From positions 1 through 64,000 of the forward strand of contig DF237320.1 in the NCBI GenBank assembly GCA_000708835.1: a stretch of DNA of 64,000 nt. The letters are read 5' to 3'. Position 1 is the stretch's first letter. Every line of letters begins with the position of its first letter. The stretch comes from Klebsormidium nitens (lineage: Eukaryota; Plantae; Klebsormidiophyceae). The notes under the pieces were generated by a model, which ran no database searches, was not told where the DNA came from, and saw only the letters and a program-made list of their open reading frames with translations. Of the stretch, positions 30,101 through 62,276 are shown in pieces. The position numbers were made by a program, and so were the translations under genes.

Positions 30101-33100
30101 CCACTCTTTATCTTCTGTCGTAAAATTTGTCCCGCACAAGCAGCCCAATCTAGAAAACAATCCTAATTTGTGCGTCATTCAGAGCTGAACGGTTCACTAA
30201 GAAGGCTCTTTTGACCAGCGTCTTTCTCTCCGCGTTCTCTTTCCAATCTCAGGCGCCCAGTCAAACTTTCACGGTTCCCAGGCGTGCTGAATGGCAACGT
30301 TTGCATCACTCTGTCATATCTTGACGTGTGAGCCATAGGCTGGAGGCTTGACATGGACATTTTCAATTTCCTGGCAGGTGCGGTACGACGATGGAACCAA
30401 GGAGGTCCTGAATCTCGCAAAAGAGCGGTGGAAGCTTCTCCCACGAAATCACGAGAACGGAGATGAGAAACAAAGGACGAGCGAAAAGAAGGGGCCAGAA
30501 CAAGACGAGGGGCCGGAAGAAAAGGGGGCTTCAGGAGAAGTGGCGATGCGGGGAGGCGATGCTGACGGGGAAGACTCTGGAGTGGACAGCAGCCTGCCCA
30601 TTAGCAACTGGGCAAAACACGCAATTGGGACCTCCAAGCTGAACGCGAAGCGCAAGAAGGCACAACGGAAAGAAGCCGCTGCCGATGCGCCAGGCAAAAG
30701 CGGCCGCCGTGAAGTGGGGGGTCCGGCAACGCGCTTTGGATCTGGGGGCGTGAACGCAAAAGAGGGAGGGGCAGGGGGGGTGCTTGCGGCTGAGAGTGGG
30801 CCCCCCTGTTTCGGGAAAGCTCCGGCGATGTTGGGGGAGGTCTTGGAGCTGGTGTTCGAAAAGGAGCGGCGGGAGGGCGCTGCAAACGAGCTGGAGGGCG
30901 GGCCTGAAGGGCTGAGAAAGCCATCGGGAGGGGGGCTGCAAATGAGCGGCGACAAAACGGCCAGGAGCGGAGCCGGAGAATGGGCAAGCGGTGCGGCTGT
31001 GGGTGCAGGCCAAGGGGACACGGTACCAGAGGACGCGTCTCACGAGCAAGATCCATCTCGAGGCTTGGTGAGCGGGACGTTGTCTAAATCCTGGGAAGCT
31101 CTCGTCTCCTTCATTGAACAGCTTCCCAGGTCCTCTTTTTCTCTAGATCTGAGGATAAGTCGATTCTGAGAGTAGCGGCTAGCCCTTCTTTGCAGCAGGT
31201 TTTTTAGCCTAGGGATGCTTTCCCTTTGGCGTTAGTCCTTTGGGCCGGGCTTTTCCGCGGGTTTCCGAGCTGGATTCGGCTCCTCCGAGCATGCTGTCGT
31301 CAATCTTCTTACACTTTGTTTCTCGGTGATCGACCCCCGTGACTTCTTGAGCGCTCAAATTGGTTGTTTCAGCCTTTGGTGAGGTTTAAAGTATACTACG
31401 ATACCTGCGTTTCTGGCAAGAATGGAAACCAGGATGGCACGTCAGTACGTGCTTGACAGATGGCGGATCGATATGTGTGTTTATGGAGCCCAAAAGAGCT
31501 TGTTCCGGGAGCACACGAACTTCCTTCGAGGAACTGAGCTTCGTCGAGGAAGAAGAAACGGGTTTGTCCATTGGAGAAGAGCCCTGGTGTCATTGGACTA
31601 CGGGTTCTCTTTCAATCAGGTTGAGTTGCATCCATGCTGCTGCGACAGGTGGGAATGAATGCTTCTCGAAGACGCGCAGATGTTTTGCATATCTTGCTCC
31701 TTAGTCCGCCGCATGTCGTCAGGAGTTGAAGAATTTCGTTCAGGTCGTGCATCTGTCGAATCCAGGAGTCAAGTGGAAGCTGGTAGACCTCGAGGATGAC
31801 TATCTCAAGACCAAAACTGCAATTTCGCAAAGCATTCTTGCACCTATTCAGACACTTTCACCAGTCGTTCCAAGTACTTCGTCTGTACGTATTCTTATTG
31901 GCTTGAGTCTTCCTTTGGCCCCACGATCAGAACGTCTGAGTTCATTCGACGTGTCTGACTGTATTTTCAACTCTGTATCACCAGCGTTTTTAAGTCCTCT
32001 TAACCCTTCCTCTTGCTGACACGCTTCTCGCTTCTAGCTAAGCACGTTTGTCGTGGGATAGCTATCTCAGCTGAGTCAACAATCGTGAACAAGCAAGCCA
32101 CTTGGCCTTACCCGTTTCCTTGTAATTCTACAGGCCAGCGGACGCGTCGCACCTACTATCCCGCCCTCTGAGCTTCCCGACCGGAAAGTCGCTGACGGAC
32201 CCCTTCCTCAGGATGCGGGGCGTGGGCGCAGCTCAGAAGTGGTCGAGGAGAAGCCTGGAGTTACAGCAGACACACCAACCGCAGCGGCTGGAGGCGACGG
32301 TCCCCCTTCGACCAATGCGGTGGACGATTCACTCAAGGCCCAACCCAAGCCCTCGGACGTGAAAGACCTGCAGTCGGATGGACTGCGGACGGCAACAGCA
32401 GAACCGAAGGGTGCGCGGGCGGATGAGACGCAGATTGAAGACCTGCGAAGTGAAGAAGCGGAGCTCGACGAACGGCAGAAGGGAGGAGTGGCTGAGGGGC
32501 CACGTGGCAGCAGCAGGAAGCGGTGCGCGTCGTGCGGGGTGACCAAGTCGAGGCGGTGGTACGGCGCGTCAGCAGGCACGCGCAAGTGCAGCAAGTGCTA
32601 TGACAGAGATCACGGGTCGAAGAACAAAGCGCGGAAGGGGAGCGGTGGGGAGAAGAAGAATGTGCCTGGCGATGAGGAAGGCGGGTCTGGAGGGCTCACG
32701 AAGAGTCGTAAGCGCCAGCGTAAAGACGGTCTCACCGCTGGGGAGGCGAAGACGGCGGGCGCTGCTGTTGGTGGCGCGGAAGTACAGCCTGGAGGCGTCA
32801 CTAAGAAGGGGCGGAAAGCCGGAATAACGGACGGGGTGAAAAGAGAGGAGGAGGAAGAGACGGAAGGCGCTGCTGAGGAGGAAGAGGTGGTGACGAAGGG
32901 CGGAGCTAAAAGAGGGAGGAGGGAGAAGTCACGAGACGGTGTGAGAGGAGAGACGGCCGAAGGGGCTCAAGGCGCCATTGACGGGGGTGCAAAGGCGGAT
33001 GCGGACATCAAGGTTCCGAAGGCAGGAAACAAGATTCGATCAGGGAAGGGCACGGACCTGGGGGAGGAACAGGGAACGGAGGGCGCTGCAAAACGTGGGG

Positions 33101-36100
33101 AGGCGGTAGAGGTGGCAGGCACGTTCCAGGGGCAAATGAGTTCGAAAAAAGGCAGCGATGCAGAGGGGGGGAGTGCGCCCGTGTTAGGGACTGAGCCGGG
33201 GGATCCCCCTGCAGGACAGGGCCTGCAAGGCTTCGTTGGCAAAGTGTCGGAGGGTTTGTTTGAAGCGGGGAAAGAACGTGTGGCAAAGGCGGATTGGGGC
33301 GAACGGCGGGAAGGTGCAGACAATGGGGCAAGCGATGCAGGGACGGGGACAGATGGGCACGCGGCCGACGCTGACAGGGAAGGCGTGGTGAAGGGGATGG
33401 CAGGGGTTTCTCGCAAGGAGAGCTTCTACAAAGGATTGGTAAGAAACTGATGCTGGTCGAGTCCTGCTTCGTGAGATTCAGAAGGTGCTTTGAACCCCAG
33501 GAACTATCTGGTTCTTAGAGCTTGCTTCTCTTTGTTGGTCGCTTGGGCGAGGGGGCAGAATGGAACGAAGTGCGTCATACCCCATGCGACTTGCTTCTGG
33601 TGTCCATGCTTTCTGTGGATCACATGTTTCTTCGCCAGTCTTCGTTAGCCAAAACCTTAAAAGCGGTCAGCAATTGCTTCTTTTGCTCCTCTGCATCCTC
33701 TGCAAATCTCGCAGGGGAAAATAAAAGTGTTGGAAGCCATTTCGTCAGAGGTGTTGCACTCGTCAGTTAGCGGCGCTCGACTGATGCTGGAAGGGTCTGT
33801 CTGGTATCGTAGCCGAGTGGCTCTGTAAGCTACGAGCAAGGAAAGCTCAGTGCCAGCGAGCAGACACGAGATGTGCCATTAGCAATCACTTCTGTTGTTG
33901 TTGACAGCTTCCTTCTGTGCGCCTGGGGTCTGCAACCGGTTAAGATATAGACTTTTCATCCTGCCTCGCATTGTGGAAAGACTGGAGAGCCTGCTTTCGG
34001 AATCGCGATGACATTCTACACTTCTACACTTCTACCTATTCAGCGTTTTAGAGGGGGTCTGCTTTTGAAGTAGCCATTCAAGGTTGTCTCAATGCAACAT
34101 GTGGTTGTTCAGACGTGCAATGGAAGAATTACCTCCGCATCCTTTTTCTTATTATCAGGACATGTATCTCATCTACACTGAGAAGGGATTTGCGGTCCTT
34201 CTCCTCTCTTCACTCCAACTCCGAGGAACCCGGATTTGGGCACGGCGACGTAATTGCAAATTCTGCCGTTTTGGGTCGGGGAAAAGCGTTCGTGAAGTCC
34301 TTTCCGTTCATTGATGTCTGCGGCACCACTTGCTGACGGCAAGTCTCCCGTTTTATCTGCAGGAGTCAGCGCATGGTTCGCCTGTCCTTTCTCCCCCAAT
34401 CAAAGCTACCAACCGGCATTCTACTGCGGGAACAAATTCAACCCCAAGCACGGAAGCAGCAGCGCCCAAAGAAGATCTCCGATCGGCTCAACCCGGCAGC
34501 AAAGCGCTGGCAGAGAATGAGCCCGGGGATAGCGACCCGTTGGCACGTGAGAAGAAGCGGAGCAGCACGGAGAAGCCTTCCGGACAGCCTAGCGCGGAAG
34601 AAGCAGGCGGAGCCATCAGAGAGGGTGAGGGAAAGCTGGTCGCCCGGAAGAAGGCACTGGGACTGGCGGCCAAGTCGACAGAGGTAGCAGGGAAGGGCGA
34701 CCCGGCAGGTGGTGTCTCGGTAAAAGCAGCGGGAGTGGAGAGTGCTCGCACTGAGGAAGAGAGCGCCAGCGCGGCATTGAGGGGCGGCACCGTCAAGCCA
34801 GTGGGGAAGGGCGCTGGCCTGGACGTTGGGAAGGGTTCTGATGTCAACGCGGGGTTGGATGCTGACGGAACGAAGGAGGGGAGAGCCGACGGTTTAAATG
34901 AGGGAGAAGGGGACGTTGCATCGGACCAGAGCGCTGACACCCCAACGAAGAAAGATCTCCTGGCTGCAATTGAGCGGGAGCTGCAGGAGAGGGAGCGTGT
35001 GGTCGAGGCGAGCACCTTGCTCGGGGGTTCCCCCGCCGAGAAGCCGCCGAAGCACAGCTCAATGCCCCAGCCGGCGGTCCTGCACCTGGAGAATGAAACT
35101 GCTAGCCTCATTTCTGGGGGCCCGGATGTTCCTCCCAGGGCTGCTGACGTTGCTGCCGGGGCTGCTGACGCCACTGGGCGTTCCGGCGCTGACCATTCGG
35201 AGGAGCGGGTCCCTGCCGCAAATGGAACGGCGATGACCTCGCCCATCGCACAGCCGGAGCTGGGGTCAAAGGAGCGGACTGATGTGGGGCAGAGGGGCGA
35301 AGGTCTGGAGAGCGGGGCTGCTGACGTCACAGCGGAGGGATGTGCTGACGGCACACAGGGGGATAACGGGCCGGACAGGAAGGAGGACAATAACGGAGGG
35401 GAGCAAGGGCACAACTCTGGAGAGAACGGTGCGCAAGGACAACAAATACGGGGTTCGCAAGATCTCAGGGAAACGAGCGGAGGCGAAGCACCACGACCGA
35501 CCATTCAGGGCGACCAGGCTGGGCCTTCGCAGCAGGCAGCAAGAGGTGAAGCGCAGACCGTGGTTGCCGAAGCAAAGGGAAAGGCTCCGGCAGGTGCCAC
35601 GTGTCACACAGAGGTACCCCCTGCGACCGAGGCGCTCCAGCATGCCGAGCAGCTGCCGTCGCCCGCAAGCTATGGTTCCCTCTAGAAGGCATATGCAGAC
35701 AAGCTTTCCGAGCCGGAAAGCGGAGGACCGTCCGAAGAGCGCGCCGGCGGTGTGTCGTCAGCCTCTCCCGGGGTTCTGCAGGAGCGCCCAGGAACAATCC
35801 CCGAGCCCTGGGCTGAAATCGTCGGCGCTCTGAGGGGGCTGATCCGCGTGACCGAGGACAGTGGCCGGGTGGTCGCGGCGCGGTTGGACACGCTTCTCGA
35901 AGCGCTCGAGCCGGCGCAAGGGGGTGGAACGAGGCAGGGGGCCCAAACAACCAGGGCCGCAGCTTTTGAGGCCGGGGCGCCGAGCACTGGGCCTTCCCTC
36001 GGGGAAGCCACGCCTCCCGAAAGTCCTGGACAGGTCCCCGAGGCTGCCGCCCGGGGAGGTGAAGTCAGCAAAGGCCGGTCAGAGGAGTCGGGATGGGGGC

Positions 36101-36798: not shown

Positions 36799-37478
36799 NN
36801 NNNNNNNNNNNNNNNNNNNNNNNNNNNNNNNNNNNNNNNNNNNNNNNNNNNNNNNNNNNNNNNNNNNNNNNNNNNNNNNNNNNNNNNNNNNNNNNNNNNN
36901 NNNNNNNNNNNNNNNNNNNNNNNNNNNNNNNNNNNNNNNNNNNNNNNNNNNNNNNNNNNNNNNNNNNNNNNNNNNNNNNNNNNNNNNNNNNNNNNNNNNN
37001 NNNNNNNNNNNNNNNNNNNNNNNNNNNNNNNNNNNNNNNNNNNNNNNNNNNNNNNNNNNNNNNNNNNNNNNNNNNNNNNNNNNNNNNNNNNNNNNNNNNN
37101 NNNNNNNNNNNNNNNNNNNNNNNNNNNNNNNNNNNNNNNNNNNNNNNNNNNNNNNNNNNNNNNNNNNNNNNNNNNNNNNNNNNNNNNNNNNNNNNNNNNN
37201 NNNNNNNNNNNNNNNNNNNNNNNNNNNNNNNNNNNNNNNNNNNNNNNNNNNNNNNNNNNNNNNNNNNNNNNNNNNNNNNNNNNNNNNNNNNNNNNNNNNN
37301 NNNNNNNNNNNNNNNNNNNNNNNNNNNNNNNNNNNNNNNNNNNNNNNNNNNNNNNNNNNNNNNNNNNNNNNNNNNNNNNNNNNNNNNNNNNNNNNNNNNN
37401 NNNNNNNNNNNNNNNNNNNNNNNNNNNNNNNNNNNNNNNNNNNNNNNNNNNNNNNNNNNNNNNNNNNNNNNNNNNNNN
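36799..37478. other. Assembly gap flanked by an identical 17-bp direct repeat
   Basis: CAAGAAGGCACGTGGCG at 36782-36798 and 37479-37495. Confidence 0.95.
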
Positions 37479-39844
37479 CAAGAAGGCACGTGGCGAAGGA
37501 TCCTCCTGGTCCAGTATACGGTCCAAACAGCTGTGAGATACGTGGCGGCTACTACTTCCAGAGGGCATAAAGTCGTTGGGTTTGCTTTTGACACGTGACT
37601 GTAGATACGGGCTGCAAGGGGGTTTTGACAGGGACGTAAGTGCTTTGTGCCCAGTTTAGCCAAAGAGGGTACTTTTGACACAGTCAAGAGCATGTAGAAT
37701 TAGCTTAATCATACAGTAGTTCAGAGGACCCGTCTATCAACACTTGCAAATGTCAATCTGTCCTTTCCGGTGACATGCGTCTGTATCTTAGTAGAGAGGT
37801 CGCATTGCAAAATTTCTTGACAAGCGACTCTAAGAATTTTGACAACAGAATAACAACAATCAAACAAAGTCTACCCCGAAAGTGTGAAAGTGTTAGATCT
37901 TGGGTTAGTGGCTGAACTAGTACTCATAAACTTTGTGACTACATTACGAACGCACCTATCCGTTTACGGTTGGTCGACCATTGAGCGGCTAGGCGACCAG
38001 AACTTGTGCACGGTACGTCTCCAAAGTTCGAGAGGGCAACGCCCGGTCTGACTTGGCCCTTCTTAGAGGCATTGTACAGTAGAGTCCCACGAGATTGAAC
38101 TGGCTGATCGCTGGCAAACGTGCTAGCACGGTTCGAATCCTATCAGAACTGTCGACTTGACGGTGGCCCGAGGGTCTCAACTCGATGGCATCATTGCAAC
38201 GAATCAAACTAGCTCCCTCAGGGCTTGTGCACTAGGCTCACGGCAAACTCGAATGCCGGGCCGGACTCACTGTGACGCATCGGTACCGTCCCGTAAGTCA
38301 GTGTTCAAGGTACTACTACCCCCCAACTTGGACGATTTGCAATCAGCTGAACCTTCTTGTCCAATGAGATATCTGATTCGCTTGCATCTATCATCATTGT
38401 CATTCGATTGTGATACTGATGCACAACTAGCTAACCGACAGCCGCGGCCGCTGCCAGTGCGCGTGGCAGGCACGTGGCTATATGTACGTGTGGATATGAC
38501 CGCATGACGTAAGACATTTCATTTAAGTGATATGTAGCTGCCAGAGACTCTGAGATCAGCCGCCACTGATCATGCAAATGGCAGATCGAACTTAGTAGAC
38601 GGTTTGAGCTCACTGGCAGCTTCCGATCCGGCGTAGTGAATCACTGCAGCCTTTCGATTAGCCAAATAATCAGTCACGGTGGCCCCATGCATATAGTGCC
38701 GCGATGCCGCCGCGTGATACGGCCTGTAGGCCAGAATTGGCAATGAATTGTTGTTTTAACGTATACAGGGCGGGCCGGGCGGCCCGCCGCGATCCGACAT
38801 GACAGTTTTAGTATCGATTGGTATGCACCTTGAACGGCACTAGGCCGGCCAGCGCGCTTTCAACTTAAGACTCGAGCAACGTGCGCGCGGGTTTCCAACG
38901 CATACATAGCTGGTGGCGCGCCACCCGCATGGGCCGCGGGCTCGACCGTCCCAAACAATCAGTCAATGAATCGACCCGGGACGGAGGGACGTACTACGGG
39001 AAACCCCAATGGATGCTTCTCTCTTTGAATAAGAGGGGTGACGCCACGACCTTCCCTCCTTCTTCCCCTCTTCTCCTCACGGACGAAGAAAGCCATTCTC
39101 TCCTCTGACATTCAGGCAAATCTGCCAGTCACAATCATAATAATGTGAGATTGTTCGACGAGCTTCAATTGCTTTTGGAAAAAGCCATAGCGAGACACGT
39201 GCGCCGCTGCTTGTAGTCCAGCCTTTGGTGTCGGGCAAAGATATGAACGTCATTGCACTTCCTGGGTTGAAACCACAAGCAATCGAAGCTGATGTTTATC
39301 TACTCAATTCTGCCCTGACTGCAAGTCGTTGCAGGTTGTCGGCATATATGGCAGGTAAACAGCTTGTGACATTGACAGCTTGTAACTTTGACAACAGAAG
39401 CCTTTTCCAGTGTTGGTCGGAAAAGAACAGGTTCAATGGGGCGATCCTGATGAAAGTCGTAGCAGAAGTCTTGAAGGGCCTTTCTCTAAAAGACGTAACC
39501 TGGGTGAACTTCTAGGTAGCTATAGCTGGCTTTGCCCCCATATCAGCACGTGAGGTCCTCCTTGTAGCTGGAAGTCGTCTGGGTCTTCTCATGTTTCTAC
39601 TTTGTTAGCGAAAGGCACCACCATCAGGGCACTCCCCTCAGACGAGCCTTCTCTGTGGAAGCATCTTAGGCAAGCTACCAGGAGATTCGTTAACCAGCAA
39701 AGCTCTTGCTGAATGGTTAAAAGAGCTTCTCTCTTTGACCAATGGATGTATAATTAGTACTAGATGCATCTAGGCCCCGCTTCATGGAAGACAGATACAT
39801 TAGACGCGGTGTCTGAACAGCTCTTCACATTCGAATTCGTACAG

Positions 39845-42800
39845 TTTCGGCGATCATTGTCACCATTGAGTGGAAGGTGCCCATCTCTTTGACGGACACC
39901 GTCATCATTGGGGACACCATCATTTGGAGCTGGGCCGACACCGCCCCCCACGACCTCACCTGTAAGCTCCTTCATGAGGCTGGCATAGTGTCAATTGAAC
40001 GAAGCAAACCTGCCAGTTTGAGAGCCTCTTGCCTTAAGATTCTTTCTCTTGGAGGACAGACTCTGGCTATCAACCCGCGTTTTCGATGCTTCATTTCCTT
40101 ATCTAGCTGTCCAGGTTTCCGTGACCATGTTCCAACATTTGCACGTGACTCCACAAATCAGAGATATACACCAAACCATTGGGGAGGCGTTCCGTGGCTA
40201 AAAATCACGCCTCCTCAGGCTTTCCCCTACTCCTCTGCAGTTCTGACTTACCCCGCTGGCTTTACTAGCATTGCGACCAACGGTGTAGAGGGGCTCATGA
40301 TCCCCACTACGCCAGTCCGGGGGCCTGTCAATGTGAGTTTCCATCCCAGTCTACCAGGGGAGTACACCTACCGGTACAGTGTTCACTCTTCCATGACTGG
40401 AACACTCACAGTGCTGGATAAGCATTGTAGTCGCAAGTACAGTGTCTATTAGAGCAAAGGGTTCAATTTGAACGGTAGTGACCAAAACGTCTAGATGGCC
40501 AGAATGTCTAGATGTGCTGATCAGAAGTCATTGATCATCTTTTCGAATGTGGATATGGGTCACACCGTGACTGGGCAACGTCACTCGGTCGAAGGGAACG
40601 TTTGACTACTTAAACTGTAATGATTCAACTCCAAGCCTAGGATTCTTGACACGATTCGGGCCGAGCCACGTGCAGGTGGTTTTGGGAGCTCCGAGTCGCT
40701 CTTCAGCACTCGTTGGGGGGGTATTGCTGATGCACCGTTGGATCGAGTTTCCTGTTTGCTGACGGTCGGATCTGCAGATCTGAAACTCGTTCTTGCGTAC
40801 ACGAAGAGTGAACACGGTTGAACAGGCACCGTAGCCTGCGCGCTGAAGCTCACAGCATTTCACATGCATGGCCTCTGACCACTTCTTATTGCCGTGCAGC
40901 GTCGGCGGTTGTAGTCACGTATGCCTGGAAGGTGCCAACCATTCTGACCAACACCATCAATCTCGGGGACACTGTCGTTTGGAACTGGGCCGACAGCGGC
41001 CCCCATGACGTTACCTGTAAGATCCTACTAATTTTAGTGTCAACTCAATCACTGCAGCAGATCTGCCACCGTGTAGATCCGCGGTTTTGGTCCTTTTCCG
41101 TATAGTTAGCTGGCCCTTTTTGACCCACCGAGTTTCTCACACACCGTCAGTGCAATCCAGTCAAGAGTGGTCAGGGCTTGATGGGCTTGAACCTTTCAAT
41201 CCTGGCCCCCTTCATTGTATCGAAGATCCCTACCGTTCAATCAGAGCTTTGAATCGCTTGAGACCCTTTTCAAACCTTGATATTACGTCAGTTTGACCCG
41301 GCGCACCCTCTCACGCTCCGTCTTCTCACCCCCTCTAAATCTGTCTTTCGTATCGTGACCATGTTTCGACCGTGGAGATGTTTCTTCACCTCTACAAGAC
41401 CCACAATACCCAAGATCGTGACCCTTCTCTTCTTCCTTTGCATTTTTGACCTATCCCACTGCATTTACCGGTATTGCCATCGACGGAGTGGTGGGGCTCA
41501 CAGTCCCTCCCATACCAGTCAAGGCCCCCTATAACGTGACTTTCCACCCCACTCTGCCTGGGACGTACTCCTACAGATGCAGCGTCCATTCGTCTATGAC
41601 GGGAACGCTCACAGTGCTCGGTAAGCCCCGGGTCGGATTGAGCTGGAAAGAGGGTGTATTCAAAACGAAGGAATAAAGACTTCTTTATCTACTGTCAAAA
41701 AATAAAAACGTGCGTTTGGATTTGAGATCATATGTGAGCAGACCAGGGTCGTTTGGGGAGCGGACTCCAAGTGCCAAACGTTACCCTATGGAGTTCAGCG
41801 ACGTCTCTTCATTTGCTGGTTCATAGTCGCCTCCGTTAATCATCACGACCCAGACCGGCAGCTTTGAGCTTTCTAAGCTTTGTACTAATTTCAAAAATGA
41901 CAGAAGTAGTCTGAGAGGGGTCAACTTGAACTTCGTCTCTTCTGAGAGTTTCTCTTGATCAACTTGTGCTTCAAAGAATTGGAGAATACGCAAACGTGAA
42001 ACTATACATCTCCGGCTCGAAACCACAGATTGCTTTGATCTCCGAGTTCCCTCTACAAGATCTAAGTTACTGGTTCAGGCCGCCTCACTGGGCCGTGGAC
42101 TTCCAATATGGCCACGGAACGCTGATTCAGACAATCGGTGACCTGAGAAAACAAGCTTTGAAAAGTGACGTTACCATCTGTGCAGGTCCTGACGTGGGCA
42201 ATATGACGCTCGGAGGCGCCACCATCACATCATCCACACCTGTACCGCTCCCATCTCCCCCCTCCAGTTCAAAAACGTTTCCAACGACAATCGCAGTTGC
42301 GGGCGGTATCGCTGCCGCAGCCATTATCATAGAAGCCTTAGCTCTTGCGTTGCTTCGCTGGAAAAGGCAGAGGAGTCGCCGACGTCCTTCCGCTAGGCCC
42401 TTGGACTCTGATGGAAAGGCTTTCGATCCCACGCAAGCCCCAACGTTGCCTGCTCGAGGGAGTTCCGGGCCGGTGTCGAGAGGGCTGCTTGACAATTGGT
42501 CCGACAGCGGACGTCAACCTGGGCCGGTCCTCTCGGATTCGTACTTGGAAGAGAGAACTCCGAAACCCCAACCGACTCAATTGGGAATGACTCAAAGGCC
42601 GCCAAAACCTGAGTTGCAAGAGCAATATACGCTGCGGCAGCTTCAAGCGGCCACCAATCATTTTTCAGAGGCTAGCGTCATCGGCGGCGGCTCATTTGGC
42701 GTGGTCTGCGAAGGTGTTCTAGCGGATGGTTCGGTGGTGGCTGTAAAGCGGTTGAGGAAGCGATTCGGCATCCGCCAGAGTGAAGAGAAGTTGTGGAGAA

Positions 42801-43720
42801 CGGAGGTGGACGCCCTTGGCAAGATGAGGCAAAAGAACCTGGTGTCACTTCTGGGAGTGTGCCTGGAAGGGGACGAGCGGCTGCTCGTATTTGAGTTCTT
42901 TCCCAGAGGTAGCCTGAACAGGCGGCTGCATGAACCTCGGGAAGAGGAGCCCGTCCTTACGTGGGCAGAGCGCATGTGCATTATCCGCGGCATCTGCCGA
43001 GGCCTGTCTTATCTTCATCACGACCTCCGGCCTCCAATGTTGCACAGGGACATCAACGCCGCCAATGTTTTGTTAACGGACGAGGAACCGTTGGAGGCCT
43101 GTATCGCAGACTTCGGCCTCGCGCACTTTGTGCAAGACGTGGGAACGAATACTTCGACCATGGTAAAGGGCACGGTTCCTTACATGGCCCCCGAATATCT
43201 GCACGGTGGGGCGCGGTTCCTCTCGCCAAAGTGCGACGTTTACAGTTTGGAATCCTCCTCTTGGAAATAATAAGCGGACAGCCAGTGGTGAGGCAACGAG
43301 AAGACGGCACAGTTGAGCGCCTCTCAAAGCTGGCCGCCAAGTTGGTCGGGCTAAGAAGGGAGTTCGAATGGTGGATCCGAAGTTGGGAACGGAGTACGAT
43401 ACGCAGGAGGCGATGTGCTGTATCCACGTGGCCATGGCATGTCTCAGAAACAAAGTGCCAACAAGCGACCAACCATGGAGCAGGTTGCCATAGATATAAC
43501 TCAGGAAGTATTGCGGCGAAGCGACTTCTTGGCGGAAGATTCGGGATCAGAAGTCTCGACGTTCCTGCAGGGTACTGGGACGGATTCTGGATCTGGGTCG
43601 TCCCCGTTTCTTTCAAGAGCTAGGACCACCTGGTCTGCTGCAAGATTTATTACTCCTAGGTCGAAGCAGCTAGGCCTGAGCTTTATAGCAACCTCGTCAC
43701 AAGGAGGCCCGGCCTCCTGA
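39845..43720 (+). pseudogene. Receptor-like kinase (RLK/Pelle) with two tandem cupredoxin (plastocyanin/amicyanin-like) ectodomain modules, probably decayed. Exons 39845-39961, 40241-40417, 40900-41016, 41444-41620, 42186-43720; signal-peptide exon not found
   Basis: Module 2: WKVP…GDTVVWNWADSGPHDVT…PGTYSYRCSVHSSMTGTLTV. TM IAVAGGIAAAAIIIEALALALL followed by RWKRQR. Kinase YTLRQLQAATNHFS, GGGSFG, VAVKRL, HRDINAAN, DFGLA, GTVPYMAPEY. Lesions: donor GT>AT (40418), acceptor AG>AT (41443), three -1 frameshifts (~43247, ~43368, ~43460). Confidence 0.82.
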
Positions 43721-44445
43721 AAAACCTTGAAGTAATTCTTCAGCAGCCTGATTAGCGTCAGCGCATGATGTGCCTTTGGTCGCTCTCCTTATGATATACT
43801 TCTCTCATGATTCAAGACATTTGGAGTGGCTCTGTTCGTCCTTCTAGTCTCATAGCATTCGAATGCATCTGATTGATACCGTGGTGCTTTGTCGTTGCGT
43901 GAGGTCACAATGGTCTTTTTGATGCTGCGCGCCAGACCGTCGATCAATTGAGAGGATGGTGGCCTAGCTAAACAGTTTAAAAAAAAAGAGTGTATCATGC
44001 ATGTCCAACCGATCCGATCGAATATGGTTCAGTGCGCACGCATACGAAGTGCGCCGCAAAAAGTTCGTAAGTTTCAAAACAGACACCATCAATCTGATGT
44101 AACTTGGTGCGTGCTCTAAACGGCGACACTGACCCGGTATCTGTGACCGTCGCGTACATCCGGCCAGTTTGACACTCGTTAGTGAATATGCTGTGGAAAT
44201 GTGACTCAGTGACTGAAGTTTTCACGCGGCTTGCTTTAAATTCGTGCGCCAGCACGCAAGAGAATGATGTCACGCAGATCAGGCCGTATAATGCGCATGC
44301 TTGGCTTTCCAGGTACGTCACTCGCGCCCGGTACTTTAGTCTGGAGAAAGCAGACCGGCGGCGCTCAAACGAGACCCAAGTGTGTTTGAGACCCAAGCAT
44401 CTGAAGTCCTTGTTGCAATCTTCCTCGTCTGTACAGACAAATAGC

Positions 44446-46428
44446 TTCCCCCGATCGAGTTCCCGACCCGCCACACGCTCGACATGTGGCTGGTCAAACT
44501 GCTGACCGCGGTGGGCGTCGAAGCCGCGGCACACCAATTCCGCTGCTGGGGACGACACATCACACTGACGACGCTTATCTTGGGCGTCGCCCTGGGCATC
44601 TCGGAGGCAATCCCCGACAACTCGGCCAAAGTGCTGCTAGTGACCGGGGCCACCGGGGTGTGCATGCCAGGTGTCGTACGTCATACCCGTGGGAAACCAC
44701 CTCATGCTCTACTTTGAAATGTAAGTGCCGCCGCCTCTAGTTGAAATTGGGTCCCTTGTCGCGTTGCTCTGCTAATGGCAACTGGTCTTCTCATTTTTTA
44801 ATATGAGAATCGAAGCAATCTGACAAGATTGAGTTGGTCAAGCTGGATTGACTGCCGGTGCTGGAAGCTTCGCGGAAAGGGTCTGCACCCACCGGAAAGT
44901 GGCTAAAGTCCTAGGATGCTGTCCATGCCAGCGTGGAAAGGGGTGGAACCCTGTCAAAAGTCCCAACAGTTGGTCGATACGCCAATCTTCAGCTGCTACG
45001 CTAACATGATCCGTTTGCCAGCCTCTACGGTTTAAGGGGTTCCTAAGTATCACTGTTCCGAGATTTAAGAAGAGAGAATTCTTACGAGAAGACGTCGAGT
45101 GGGCCTGCTTGTGCGCTCGGCAGCTGAGCAGCTTTGGGGGCAAGGTGTCTTTTCTACGGATATGCAAGCGTGAAGCACACTCCCTTTTTTTTCATTCATG
45201 AAAGTGGATGTCCCTCACAAGCGGAGACAGTGCATTGAAGCGTTCCTTTCGTACGACGTAATGATCGTCTGCTCTATAACATTTGAAACCTTCGTCTCCA
45301 CGCACGAAGACTCTGCGCAGACACGAAAACGTTTTTCTCAGGGCGAATGATCTGGATGTCTTAGACTCTCAAGGACAGCTTCCCTAAGCCCCCTCTTTTA
45401 GGCCCCAGTGGCTTCGCTTCCCGTGCCTATTCGCATCCAGACTTCAAGCTTTGTGTTTGCAGCACCCGGTGTCAGCGCCGGCTCAAAGCGGAGCTGATGC
45501 GGAACTTGTCCCTGCACGGAGGAGACGTCTCCGTGCACTCGCAGGTGGTCTCAAGCACCGGCTTAGTCGACCGGTTGCGTCTGCGGGATGCCCCGCCTGG
45601 TCGAAAGCGCTGCTCCAGCATCTTTTTGAATACCGGTCTTAAGATTTCTTGAAGGAGGACTGTGTTTGCTAGTACGGCACGATTCACAGGCGTTCCACCT
45701 TGCTCGTCTCCGCAATTGACCGGTTGCTGAAATGTCTGCCGTTTAGCCGAGGACCGATGAAGTCCTTGTTAAGCGGTTCAACATGGTATGTGATCAGCTT
45801 GAGTGCGATATTCAAGGAGGACGGAACGAGCAGCTAGATCCCACATCATTTGCCTCGACTCTGAACCAGTAATGGCCTCCGCAACCCCGGGCCAAGTCCC
45901 TCTGAAAGATGGTTCGTCTCTTTCAGAGTGACCACTGCTTTGAATCCGGCGAGCAAATCAGCGAGTTCTTTGGAGTGATCGTGGGGGACAGCAAGCTCTC
46001 CACCTGCTTAAAACGAGCGTCCAACAGGCGCTGGGGCGGTCCCTTGAAAGGTGTTGATCCTTTCCTTCTCATCATCCCTCGTCATTTCCCGGATTAAGAT
46101 CTTCTGTACATTGAAGCCAAACAGCTTTAACCAACACCTAATCATCGATGATATGGTCCCTCGCTTTGCCCTCGCCCAGTACCGCGGCCACGTGCTGCTC
46201 AAGGAGCTTCAGAACCTGGCCGTGCCTCTGAAAGAGGCGCTCCCCCCCCTGGGCCCCAACTCCGAAAACGGCCCCCCCAACGTGCTCGAGTATCGCAAAA
46301 AGCCCACTTACCCCGGGGCGTTCGGGACGCTGTACGAGGCCGTCACGCAAGTGGGCGCCCCGCTTCTAGTCCTCGCCGTCGGCGTCTTCTGCAGCGTCGC
46401 TGCGCTGACAACCATCAACACACTGTAA
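44446..46428 (+). pseudogene. 5'-truncated paralogue of the amino-acid transporter (equivalents of exons 8-10 only)
   Basis: High identity to 14250-16037; starts mid-exon 8; 4-nt CCAG insertion after GTGTGCATG (~44669) shifts the frame; exons 1-7 not present upstream. Confidence 0.88.
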
Positions 46429-58326: not shown

Positions 58327-59393
58327 CTGGAGTTGGGCCGCAATATCATACAGCGTCGAAGTGCTGAGACAAGATCGGCACGGGACAGATTAGAACCTTG
58401 GAAGTAACAGCGGCAGTGCATGCTAAGACTAAAACAGTAGATGCTACTTCCCGTTACGACTTGTGGAGCCGAACTCTTGTTGTAGGAGATTTTTGAGAAG
58501 CGAAAAAGTTCGCCCATGGAAGGAAGGTCTCATCGGTTAAGTAAACATGACAGAATGTTTCATCTTTTCACCAAAAATCTTTTGGAAGCAAGGCCGCCCG
58601 TCAATGGCACAGTCAATTGCCGGTTTTCAATTGCGGAAGTTTCAAGGGGTTTCGTGTAAGCTAGTAGCTTCGAACGGAGCGGAAGGAGATCGTAGAACCA
58701 AATGTCTTGAGAATTGACCCAAAGGAGCAAAACTATTAGAGCTCCACTTTACGGTCTGCTAGACCTGCGTAACTTGTCAGGCCATAGATAAAAAATTACC
58801 GGTGAGGGGAAGGATGGCGAGCCCGTACAGAAGTATCAATTACTGACTTGGGAGCTGGTAGCCAGTAAGAGCAGGGTCCGGCCAGATGCGCAAGGGCCAT
58901 AATGTCCAACCATGCATAAACTCCTGGTCCAGAAGGTCTACTTTCAACATTCACTCCGCACTGCTTATGGCGCAATCTTTATCAGCTTCATTGTCTTTTC
59001 CTTATTGTGATTTGGACACAACGTAACAAGTGATGGTGGTGAGACGTACACATATTGCGGTGTTCCGCCACTACTAAAAAGACGCACAGCCCAAAAAAGC
59101 ACCGGTTTCGAATTACGAAGCTACTAAAAGATCTGCATTCCAAGCCTGATGCAGCTTTTTGTTGGATCTATTTTTCGGAGCTAGGCCACACTTGTGATCA
59201 GTCGCCAGGAAAAGTCAAACCAGAGAGCACTTCCAGCCACCCGGGAACTGTATACTCGTATCAAGGAAAGGATCCAATGACGTCACTTAACTTTGGGGCA
59301 GTAGAATACTGTAGTTCTAACATCATTTCGTGTCTCCCTTGCACAATCTTTTGAGAAACAGGATCAAAATTTATTTTGCGCCGCTTGCTCACC

Positions 59394-60477
59394 TTTGTGT
59401 CTTTACTCGAATCGGAGCTCTGTTCAAGCCAGCATCCTTCAGCTCCAGCAGGCTCTCAACGACGTCATCGACGTAAGCAAATGTGCGACGCCTATTTGCC
59501 CCACGCAAAGAGACAGATATGTACGCTGGATTATTGATTCCTTGTTGGATCAGATCTCGTATGGCCAAATCAGCAGCCGGCGTGGCCCCAAGCAAGACAT
59601 AATCGTGAGGGCCATATGCACAGTCTATTCTTAACACGCCAACTTTAAAATCCGCCGTCTTTTCCGAAGTGGCTTCGTTTTCTCCCATAGCTTTCATCCA
59701 ATTATGGGTGTTCGCTCCAGTTATGACAGGAGGCGGCAATATTCTGGACATATACCAGCCCGTTGGTATTGCTGCTGCCACATAGATATAATTGGGTATG
59801 CCGTTCCGCTTGCAGGAGTTCAAAGACAGTGTATTAATCAGGACGTTATCATCAAAGTACGGATCCGTGCCATCTTGGTCGTCAGCGACTCCCGTCATAA
59901 TAGCAAGGTGGTAGACATAGTCGGCTCCACGCAGGTATCTTTCCGAGCTCTCCCCTATCCTGAGGTCTGCATGACAGAAGTCTCGAGAGACGTTGATAGC
60001 CCAGGAACCATTTTCAATTTGGAGGTTTCGTAGCTGACCCCGCCATAGGTTATCGATAACTTTGATCTGCTCGCTCGGGACTACTCCGCTAAGCTTCTTG
60101 ACCAGATTGCTGCCGATAAAACCTGCACCACCGGTTACTATGAAGCGCGGCCGGGGCGTGTCTGGTTGAAAGAGACCATGAGCTTCGCCGTGGAAGGGAC
60201 ACCCCTTGCCAGCAATGTCTGGGAAGTCTGAATGCAGGATATCTCCCGCAGCTTCTGCTGCTGAATAGATCCGTTTGCTTGTGTATTTTTGATCAGGTTT
60301 CTGGGCTGGTTCAAAGTGTAGCCCTTGAAATACATTTTGCGCTTCCAGACTCCACCTGGAAGGTGGGCTCAAAAGCAGGGTGGAGGGCTCTGCCGCGTCC
60401 CGGAATCGCTGCAAGCCCAAGAAAAGAATACTGAGGGTCACCCCGAGGGGCAAGACGTAACCTTGCGAGAGACCCAT
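59394..60477 (-). CDS. Membrane-anchored NAD-dependent NDP-sugar epimerase/dehydratase-like protein (extended SDR); 3' exons unresolved
   Basis: ATG 60477 (MGLSQG), TM YVLPLGVTLSILFLGL, Rossmann motif FIVTGGAGFIGSNLV, VIDNLWRG, VYHLA, RTFAYVDDVVE; GTGAGC donor at 59393. Confidence 0.82.
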
Positions 60478-62276
60478 TGACCTGTAAGCTTCAACACATT
60501 TGCAGGCTAGCTTGCAATGCTTTCTCTTGCCTTGCAGCCTTACAAATACGAGAGACAACCTTCCATCCCCGTGCGTGTGGCAATGCTGTTTTGTGACGTG
60601 TAATAGCAGGAAGCTTGCGGTGTGACACAAGCGCAGGCCATAACAAGTGAAGAGATGCTCTAAACCAAAAATAAGGACCAGTGGGCCTAAATGTATCTAG
60701 CTTAGTCAAGCGGCGCGCCGGCCTTGGACGCACTGATTGAGAAGTCAACCGATCCGTTCAGGAGCAGATCAAGCAGCTGGACGTGGTATATGACAGACCA
60801 ATAGGCTCAGACTTCACTCCCATGCCAGACCTGATCAACAAGATTGTGCAATGCGGAGGTTCAGTCTAGTCAGCTCTTCCCTCACTCAGACTACGACTTC
60901 AAGTTGCAGATAGCTAGCTTCTGGGACGTCCTGTTAAAAATACCGGTATAACGTGTAGACTGTCCAATTGGGCTGCACCGGGGGCTGCACCAACAACAAA
61001 GATCTATTTCTGCAGCTCCTTATCGTCTTGTACTCAAAATCCCTTACTTACCGTAATCGGCTAAGAATGCATTGGAACCGCCGTGTCTGCAAACATGTGA
61101 GGGTTGAAACTCCGCAAGTGCATTGAATCTTAAGAAATTTCTCGACTCCAAAGCAAACGAACGAATCTACGATAATGACGTGACGCACGAATGCAGCCCG
61201 GCCGCGGAAGGACGTATTTCATGCGGCCCCAATGTCGGCGGGCCGGAGACGAAGTGCTTCATGCCTGTGATTGTTTCAGTCAACATAATCATGACCACAA
61301 CTTTGTGACCGCACAATATCAATTTTGAATAATTACTCAAGCTTTTAAGCTCGACAGATCCATTGAACCTTCAACCGGTCATGTCATTCTGTCATGCAGC
61401 GGCCTCCCCCAGTCGTACTGCAGATTCACTGAACCAGGTCCGGCGCATAAGGCATTTGACGGTCGCGATCGACACAATTGACGTCATCTATTTTATACTA
61501 CTAGTGTCTACTAGTGATCGCAATCGTCAGCTCACGTGCAGGTGTACGCAGATCGACGACATACCTAACTTAATATCACAAATGTACGCTTACAGCGCAT
61601 GCGGCCAGCTTGGGCCTCGCGGCCGGCGCACCGCTAACCCTTCCTACTTTTTACTGAACTTCTCAGCACACGCCATACCTAGAATATTGCCCTGTTTCTA
61701 CATAAATGGCCGTTTATCGTCGAAACCGGTGAATTTGGTGACGGGAGCGCGGGCAAGTGCGGCAGAATCTTGTGACGGATTAGCACGTACAGCACTTTAT
61801 CGAACGGAATCTACAGCCAAATGACGAGCCCGTCGAAAATGACTCCTCGGGAGTTCTCGATTGAGCGACCTTCCATGCTAATATATGTACATCTCTGTCG
61901 CCGGACTTTACAACTCAGGAAAAGGTGGATGAAAGAGAATTCGTATCGATCTGTTTTAACCGTACAGTCAACAGTAACCTACCGTAATTTTACCAATCGG
62001 TATAAGTTTGATTGACCTGGTAGGCAATCCCGGTAGACTGTACTGAAAGCAAACCGACCACTATACCCAGTCCAAAAGCTACCCGGCTACCCGGTAGCTA
62101 AGCTCGGTACTTCGTTCCGCGCTTCCGGCAACCGTGGTCCCCGACAATCTGTAGGCGGAGTTCAGTATCACATCGTAGATTATTTTTCAATCTCTAGCTA
62201 CTGCAACTACCGGTGATAGTCCCATCTGAGTAGGCTGACGTCGCTGTTCGACGGTACGGGTAAAACGACTGAGCCT

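Follow-up and report, generated by a model that had tools for sequence, protein, structure and literature searches.

Tandem blue-copper exons in front of a damaged receptor-like kinase exon in Klebsormidium nitens

Layout of the locus and its lesions

We examined a 64,000-nucleotide stretch of the Klebsormidium nitens genome (contig DF237320.1 of assembly GCA_000708835.1, positions 1 to 64,000 of the forward strand; hereafter the window), in which two tandem two-exon modules precede a transmembrane helix and a kinase of the receptor-like kinase (RLK)/Pelle type between positions 39845 and 43720. All these parts can be read in the sequence, in the order that an earlier note on this DNA had given. 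The locus is the annotated gene KFL_003710060 ('hypothetical protein', 482 amino acids, here P0001): in a word search, the 434-residue open reading frame (ORF) at 41966-43270 matched it with 97% identity across 86% of the query. The database annotation, which gives a kinase domain only, overlooks the ectodomain.

Module 1 begins with exon a (39845-39961, plus strand, as are all exons described here), which encodes cupredoxin strands 1-3 and carries the codon of a His ligand at 39949-51; its acceptor (cag) and donor (gtaagc) are intact. Exon b follows at 40241-40417 with Tyr (40375-77) at the site of the Cys ligand, His at 40384-86 and Met at 40393-95. Module 2 repeats the arrangement, with exon a at 40900-41016 (His ligand codon 41004-06) and exon b at 41444-41620, the latter encoding a complete Cys-x2-His-x2-Met loop at 41578-98 (Cys 41578-80, His 41587-89, Met 41596-98) and ending at an intact donor GT (41621-22). 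All four exons are of phase 1-1. The two modules share 62 of 96 residues, and tblastn aligns their a exons with an E value of 9e-14 and their b exons with 7e-24, far above chance. No third copy was found within the window by tblastn with the modules or with the secreted paralogue described below. Candidates at about 16.5-16.7 kilobases (kb) and at 58.3 kb were rejected, their E values (0.1-2) being at chance level and the paralogue queries not returning the same matches.

The rest of the protein is encoded by a single exon (42186-43720), in which a Ser/Pro-rich stalk leads into a hydrophobic helix (42290-42358), a basic stop-transfer segment (RWKRQRSRRR), a juxtamembrane region of 170 residues and the kinase, whose catalytic loop lies at 43043-66. 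The helix, with a Kyte-Doolittle mean over 19 residues of up to 2.34, is the only one between ectodomain and kinase. The kinase domain matches Pfam Pkinase at 1e-33 and PK_Tyr_Ser-Thr at 8e-33. The donor of module 2 at 41621 and the acceptor at 42185 join the ectodomain to this exon in frame (...TVLG-PDVG...), with the same junction as in the annotated model.

That model takes an unusual path. It starts with an exon of seven bases (ATGGCAG, 39349-39355), which encodes only Met-Ala before the splice (atggcag/gtaaac; here and below the slash marks an exon boundary), continues with spliced module 1 and seven read-through codons, and then uses a cryptic donor at 40437 and a cryptic acceptor at 41576, thereby joining the last 15 codons of module 2. 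It ends with the transmembrane-kinase exon up to a stop at 43268, giving a truncated kinase. The protein opens with MAV and then SAIIV; there is no signal peptide, as a type I topology would call for, and the annotated N-terminus leads directly into the domain. Scanning 37480-39844 for an ATG exon that encodes a hydrophobic core and ends in a phase-1 donor revealed none, and tblastn of the signal peptide of the putative parent gene, KFL_001670020, against the window gave no match. An assembly gap (a run of N) occupies 36800-37479, 2.4 kb 5' of module 1, with the same caagaaggcacgtggcg words on both flanks.

Upon closer examination, the reference copy proved to carry several lesions. The donor after module 1 exon b reads AT at 40418-19, where module 2 (ctcg/gtaagc) and the parent (gctg/gtgagc) have GT. 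Likewise, the acceptor before module 2 exon b reads AT at 41442-43, where module 1 and the parent have AG, and the closest AG further 5' would bring in an in-frame stop. With these two sites lost, splicing of module 2 by the ancestral sites is no longer possible, and no other module has a full ligand set. In module 1, the Cys ligand itself has been replaced by Tyr. The catalytic loop of the kinase reads HRDINAAN, with Asn (43055-57) for a Lys that is found in every inspected paralogue. Three frameshifts, at 43245/46 (-1), 43368/69 (-1) and 43446-48 (+2), separate subdomains IX-XI, and the stop falls just past DVYS, leaving no complete catalytic core. The kinase at this locus has thus lost both the catalytic-loop Lys and the reading frame of its C-lobe. 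The earlier note had called the locus a damaged one from the Cys replacement; the splice-site lesions, the loss of Lys, the frameshifts and the missing signal-peptide exon go well beyond that claim.

Blue-copper identity and likely source of the modules

Both modules belong to the amicyanin/plastocyanin family of blue-copper (cupredoxin) domains. As had been proposed, module 2 has by sequence the full type-1 ligand set His, Cys, His, Met, with His in PHDVT and the loop C-S-V-H-S-S-M, and in module 1 the set is incomplete, with Tyr for Cys. The two exons of module 2 entered the searches and alignments singly, and module 1 was used in its spliced form through P0001. A check against the Copper-bind and Cupredoxin hidden Markov models, suggested by the earlier note, gave a divided answer. 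Searched exon by exon, only module 2 exon b matches Pfam (Cupredoxin_1 at 1.4e-3, Copper-bind at 0.011, in both cases over the C-terminal third of the profile); alone it falls short of the cut-offs, with 16.6 bits against 21.2 on PF00127 and 19.1 bits against 27 on Cupredoxin_1. Spliced module 1 has no Pfam match, and the domain of the paralogue KFL_001670020 (P0122) reaches 29.2 bits on PF00127, above the cut-off of 21.2. Since the modules themselves fall below the Pfam cut-offs, we draw the family assignment from the paralogue, from a family profile and from the fold.

The best sequence matches of spliced module 1 in the PDB are a fern plastocyanin (E 0.048) and then amicyanins. Hits of the exhaustive profile search described below were assembled into a family alignment of 40 rows, in which Trp, His, Gly, Tyr, Cys, His, Met and Gly are almost invariant. 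When this family profile is compared with the PDB, a cupredoxin fused to nitrite reductase is matched at 2e-23, amicyanins between 7e-20 and 1e-17, and plastocyanins from 1e-18 on towards weaker values. In the profile alignment to amicyanin, the C-x2-H-x2-M of the modules' family has the amicyanin spacing, as the earlier note had held.

The fold agrees with this assignment. The AlphaFold2 model of module 1 (P0001 residues 3-101) is all-beta with ten strands, with a predicted local distance difference test score (pLDDT) of 82.9 and a predicted template modelling score (pTM) of 0.73. Among the top 50 Foldseek matches of this model in the PDB, nearly all are amicyanins, plastocyanins or pseudoazurins and the remainder are other copper proteins of the cupredoxin fold; all 50 have probability 1.00, with template modelling scores of about 0.45-0.71. 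The cupredoxin fold that the earlier note expected from structure prediction is therefore what the model gives. In the ESM Atlas, the structural neighbours of P0001 residues 1-126 are Copper-bind clusters of bacteria and archaea, with no kinase among them.

The modules share with amicyanin and plastocyanin (PF00127) the fold and the ligand order His ... Cys-x2-His-x2-Met, the loop length being that of amicyanin. They differ in setting: amicyanin and plastocyanin carry electrons as soluble proteins of one domain, in the periplasm of bacteria or in the thylakoid lumen, whereas the modules belong to a eukaryotic secretory-pathway family, stand in tandem and are fused to a transmembrane helix and a kinase, module 1 in addition being without the Cys. 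Their family also has an insertion of 12-15 residues (the G-L-T-V-P-P-x-P-x-R-A-P region) relative to amicyanin and plastocyanin. Phytocyanins and early nodulin-like proteins of land plants (PF02298) resemble the modules in being extracellular and of cupredoxin fold, but they form another cupredoxin family, are secreted or anchored by glycosylphosphatidylinositol (GPI) and are not fused to kinases; the modules match PF00127, not PF02298. Some early nodulin-like proteins lack the copper ligands, are GPI-anchored and act with receptor kinases at the plant cell surface (PMC6726743).

A word search with P0001 residues 1-102, with full-length size limits, returned two relatives only. One is KFL_001670020 of K. 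nitens (P0122, 289 amino acids), 63% identical to module 1, and the other its orthologue P0121, a Joint Genome Institute protein of 290 amino acids labelled plastocyanin (66% identical). In both, a signal peptide is followed by a single intact copper domain, its ligands in the pattern His ... Cys-x2-His-x2-Met, and by a C-terminal region of about 170 residues that is rich in NxT sites for N-glycosylation; unlike the locus, they have neither transmembrane helix nor kinase. In P0122 this region (residues 119-289; 8445-9931 of L001, the genomic locus of KFL_001670020) belongs to no assigned family, its only match being a weak, sub-threshold one to DUF2844.

The exon structure of KFL_001670020 is informative. 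Its blue-copper domain, to which the modules are 60-65% identical, is split in L001 at the same residue as in the modules (...PHDIQ/F/LTFP... against ...PHDLT/F/LTYP...), and its first copper-domain exon opens at the same Ser-Ala. Its signal-peptide exon and its last three exons have no counterpart in the modules. When the two modules and the parent are compared, alignment is still possible in the exons alone, with 72-75% nucleotide identity. The shared intron position argues that the ectodomain is a DNA-level copy of exons 2 and 3, intron included, and from these sequence comparisons the KFL_001670020 lineage is the likely donor.

Ratios of nonsynonymous to synonymous substitution (Ka/Ks), counted exon by exon by the Nei-Gojobori method, are 0.21 between the modules, 0.24 between module 1 and the parent and 0.19 between module 2 and the parent, with Ks of 1.0-1.4. 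Values near 0.2 at Ks near 1 show that both modules have been mostly under purifying selection throughout their history, that the duplication is old and that the coding unit was functional for long.

A member of the family from another streptophyte alga points to its surroundings. P0128, a gene model of Mesotaenium endlicherianum (ME000243S04013, 496 amino acids), has three cupredoxin domains of the same W-x-W-x-D ... C-x-x-H family, connected by long linkers that are rich in Ser and Pro and resemble extensin. The protein has the look of a copper-protein chimera of the cell wall, and its linkers fit an extracellular or cell-wall setting for the cupredoxin family.

Kinase relatives and the search for a receptor family

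The closest kinases are those of Klebsormidium, 62-68% identical and joined to DUF642, LRR or no recognised ectodomain, followed by PERK, CRK and LRR-RLKs of land plants. In a maximum-likelihood tree, rooted at the midpoint and including two badly cut rows on long branches, the kinase of the locus pairs with P0010, a sequence derived from Logan, at a support of 89/92, and its surroundings in the tree are sequences of Klebsormidium and of Logan runs. All six rows of land plants fall together in a clade of their own with 100/100 support, which lies nested within the Klebsormidium and Logan rows. The group has a common C-terminal ...RF(V/I)TPR, which at this locus is found as ARFITPR at 43640-60, in the frame reached past the third frameshift. 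Klebsormidium RLKs of the same group (P0002, P0003, P0008 and P0009) share this end and have the transmembrane helix and the kinase in one block. They differ from the locus in their DUF642 or LRR ectodomains, in keeping Lys in HRDxK and in their open frames. Two of them, P0002 and P0008, K. nitens RLKs from outside the window, carry a DUF642 (PF04862) ectodomain.

The nearest kinase of all is on the Logan contig L002 (run SRR14092359), with 80% protein identity. Its N-lobe is interrupted within positions 560-620 of L002, where a stop lies in frame past the VAVK strand and ahead of helix C, and this copy may likewise be a pseudogene. Contig L003, from the sister run SRR14092360, carries a piece resembling exon a with the Klebsormidium intron position; within its positions 1-440, three successive partial starts of a cupredoxin exon a stand about 150 bases apart, and the last alone is complete. 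No link between the L002 kinase and the L003 piece could be made, and this candidate was dropped.

The earlier note had supposed that a family of copper- or redox-sensing receptor kinases may exist in this lineage. To this the searches lend no support. An exhaustive profile search with the modules and their paralogues against 1.84 billion representatives gave 554 hits, only P0001 and P0122 lying below 1e-30 and the remaining hits starting at 2e-21. Among the leading hits, many contain at least five stretches that match the profile. Ten that were looked up come from eukaryote transcriptomes, a Mesotaenium gene model, or run and metagenome assemblies. Among the best 150 of the 554 hits, phmmer with a Klebsormidium kinase domain found no kinase. 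A metagenome scan yielded no close relative of the modules, its 21 loci being 29-47% identical, and no short ORFs with exon b from relatives appeared in a word search that used an alignment of the four exon-b peptides as query. An intact paralogue combining cupredoxin, transmembrane helix and kinase was thus found neither in the word and metagenome searches nor among the best 150 of 554 profile hits. With two close relatives only, both of them secreted, and a kinase-free set of best profile hits, a receptor family is not supported: what is present is one locus, its orthologues in close relatives and one secreted paralogue.

The view that cupredoxins stand outside the standard RLK ectodomains holds insofar as the combination is rare, and fails as an absolute statement. 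Of the 40,418 RLKs counted in silico across 80 plant genomes, 12 models are classed as 'Plastocyanin-like-RLK', all uncharacterised there (PMC9603095, Table 1). Judged by the counts in that table, a cupredoxin-like domain combined with an RLK is rare and uncharacterised and not unheard of. This class resembles the present locus in joining a copper-protein-like ectodomain to a kinase.

Origin and decay of the locus

Receptor kinases diversified through ectodomain swapping, a process that began in streptophyte algae. We consider it probable that KFL_003710060 is a product of this process, namely a lineage-specific chimeric receptor-kinase gene of Klebsormidium, built with copied cupredoxin exons, kept under constraint for a long time and now decayed in strain NIES-2285. 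Two cupredoxin exons with their intron would have been copied from a secreted, amicyanin-like blue-copper gene of the KFL_001670020 lineage; the copy would then have been duplicated in tandem and set in phase before a transmembrane-kinase exon, which belongs to a Klebsormidium RLK group whose remaining members have DUF642, LRR or different ectodomains. Given the purifying selection on both modules, the gene would once have been functional, as a whole or at least in its tandem cupredoxin coding part. The ancestral protein would have had the type I topology of a receptor, its two amicyanin-like domains facing outwards and its RLK/Pelle kinase lying within the cell; at the cell surface the copper domains would have served as a binding or a redox-sensitive module. 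Two roles of the ectodomain are plausible, as a switch that depends on redox state or copper, or as a rigid module for binding, like the copper-free early nodulin-like proteins that act with receptor kinases in land plants. Module 1 lost its Cys under continued constraint (per-branch Ka/Ks of about 0.3, from a three-way split of the pairwise values), which leans slightly towards a binding role for at least this module.

Two related Klebsormidium-like organisms, B and C, allow some of these changes to be ordered. In organism C, a single contig of 5.9 kb spans 39376-43675 of the locus. It holds the whole arrangement, indicating that the union of cupredoxin exons and kinase is older than the split of these organisms. 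This contig skips 40988-41736, that is, the end of module 2 exon a and all of exon b; contigs of organism B cover both exons of module 2. The contigs of these two relatives, from runs X5 and X7, are roughly 90-95% alike to the window. Both have an additional T after 43245 and another after 43368, and both are without positions 43446 and 43448, changes that restore the paralogue-like readings DVYSFGILLLEIISG (DVYSFGILLLE), REFELVDPKLGTEYD (REFELVDPKLG) and CLEQSANKRPTMEQV. Since both relatives differ from the window in this way and so restore the frame, the window is -1, -1 and +2 relative to the ancestral state. The comparison with X5 and X7 was made from the listed rows of difference tables, with a further 553 substitutions and 59 insertions or deletions beyond them.

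Three other readings keep a small share of probability. In the first, the cupredoxin exons and the kinase were never one gene, and a remnant of a tandem secreted cupredoxin merely lies 5' of an N-terminally truncated RLK. It draws support from the modules' sole close relative being a secreted protein without kinase, from the signal-peptide exon that was not found in 37480-39844, and from 17 runs of the same species label, presumed to be RNA, none of which contained a sampled word of the locus, let alone RNA joining the cupredoxin exons to the kinase. Against it, every exon lies on the same strand in phase 1-1, the module 2 donor and the acceptor of the kinase exon join in frame, and 5' of the helix the transmembrane-kinase exon offers neither a start codon nor a signal sequence. 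Moreover, the 170 C-terminal residues of the secreted protein are missing from the modules, the whole arrangement recurs on one contig of organism C, and Ka/Ks of 0.2 in both modules demands a long-lived coding unit. We regard this reading as improbable.

Equally improbable is that the gene functions as annotated, with a Cys-less module, a transmembrane helix and a truncated, dead kinase making up a receptor-like protein or pseudokinase scaffold of 482 amino acids. The cryptic donor at 40437 and the cryptic acceptor at 41576 do keep a single open frame, and copper-free cupredoxin domains such as those of early nodulin-like proteins act at plant cell surfaces (PMC6726743). Yet the model has no signal peptide, its stop inside kinase subdomain IX was made by a frameshift that two relatives lack, the locus is absent from all of the 17 presumed RNA runs, and the gene models of this genome are Augustus predictions (PMC4052687). 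Taken as evidence for silence, the absence from these runs is weak.

Least probable of all is that K. nitens has the receptor kinase intact with both of its cupredoxin modules, and that the lesions are errors of sequencing or assembly. In favour of it, the reference assembly was made by Newbler out of 454 and Illumina reads (PMC4052687), two changes are -1 in T runs and the three shifts add up to zero. But the T runs are only 3 and 1 long, the +2 change is no homopolymer error, and 454 seldom miscalls substitutions, to which the two splice-site lesions, Cys>Tyr and Lys>Asn belong. Moreover, contigs reassembled from this strain's own reads (X1) match the window without any difference across all 5.5 kb, at a word depth of about 15, and a run from an independent study of the same organism (X6, bisulfite-like) agrees with the window at 43446-48. 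We are therefore highly confident that the damage is real. Over 39000-44500, X6 differs from the window solely by G>A and C>T, as bisulfite-treated DNA would, and it covers the introns and the module region. Methylation of the locus could thus be read from the raw data.

Several points nevertheless weigh against a chimeric gene that has since decayed. The 454/Newbler origin of the assembly, the two frameshifts in T runs and the zero sum of all three have just been named, and X1 may be the assembly's own source. X5 and X7 are known from partial difference tables and not from whole frames, splice sites or the Cys/Tyr codon. No transcript links the modules to the kinase in any organism, the annotated model being an Augustus prediction. 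Finally, the gap at 36800-37479 could conceal an upstream first exon.

The chimeric, decayed gene remains in our judgement the best explanation, and in strain NIES-2285 the locus is probably a decaying, silent pseudogene. As it stands in the reference strain, such a pseudogene is of limited functional interest. The locus does carry a new ectodomain variant of receptor kinase, dead in the reference strain, and it would make a clear and datable case of ectodomain swapping, in which exons were copied, duplicated, set in phase before a transmembrane-kinase exon, selected and then allowed to decay. It is possible, though we would not expect it, that the orthologue in organisms B and C still encodes a working receptor kinase with one or two blue-copper modules. 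Were this true, these organisms would have a receptor at the cell surface that reads copper, redox state or a partner binding the cupredoxin, and the gene of K. nitens would have died recently. With an intact orthologue from a sister species, a receptor kinase with a type-1 copper ectodomain would become tractable for the first time, opening a direct route to asking whether the algal relatives of plants sense copper or apoplastic redox through a kinase.

No RLK or copper protein was found among the ORFs neighbouring the locus. Upstream, the segment 32000-36000 has a G+C content of 58-61% with strong positive GC and AT skew, and includes two long plus-strand ORFs without Pfam family (32239-33450 and 34330-35685). 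On the other side, a long minus-strand ORF at 59389-60630 encodes a NAD-dependent epimerase/dehydratase domain (PF01370, 3.6e-17) and represents an ordinary neighbour gene.

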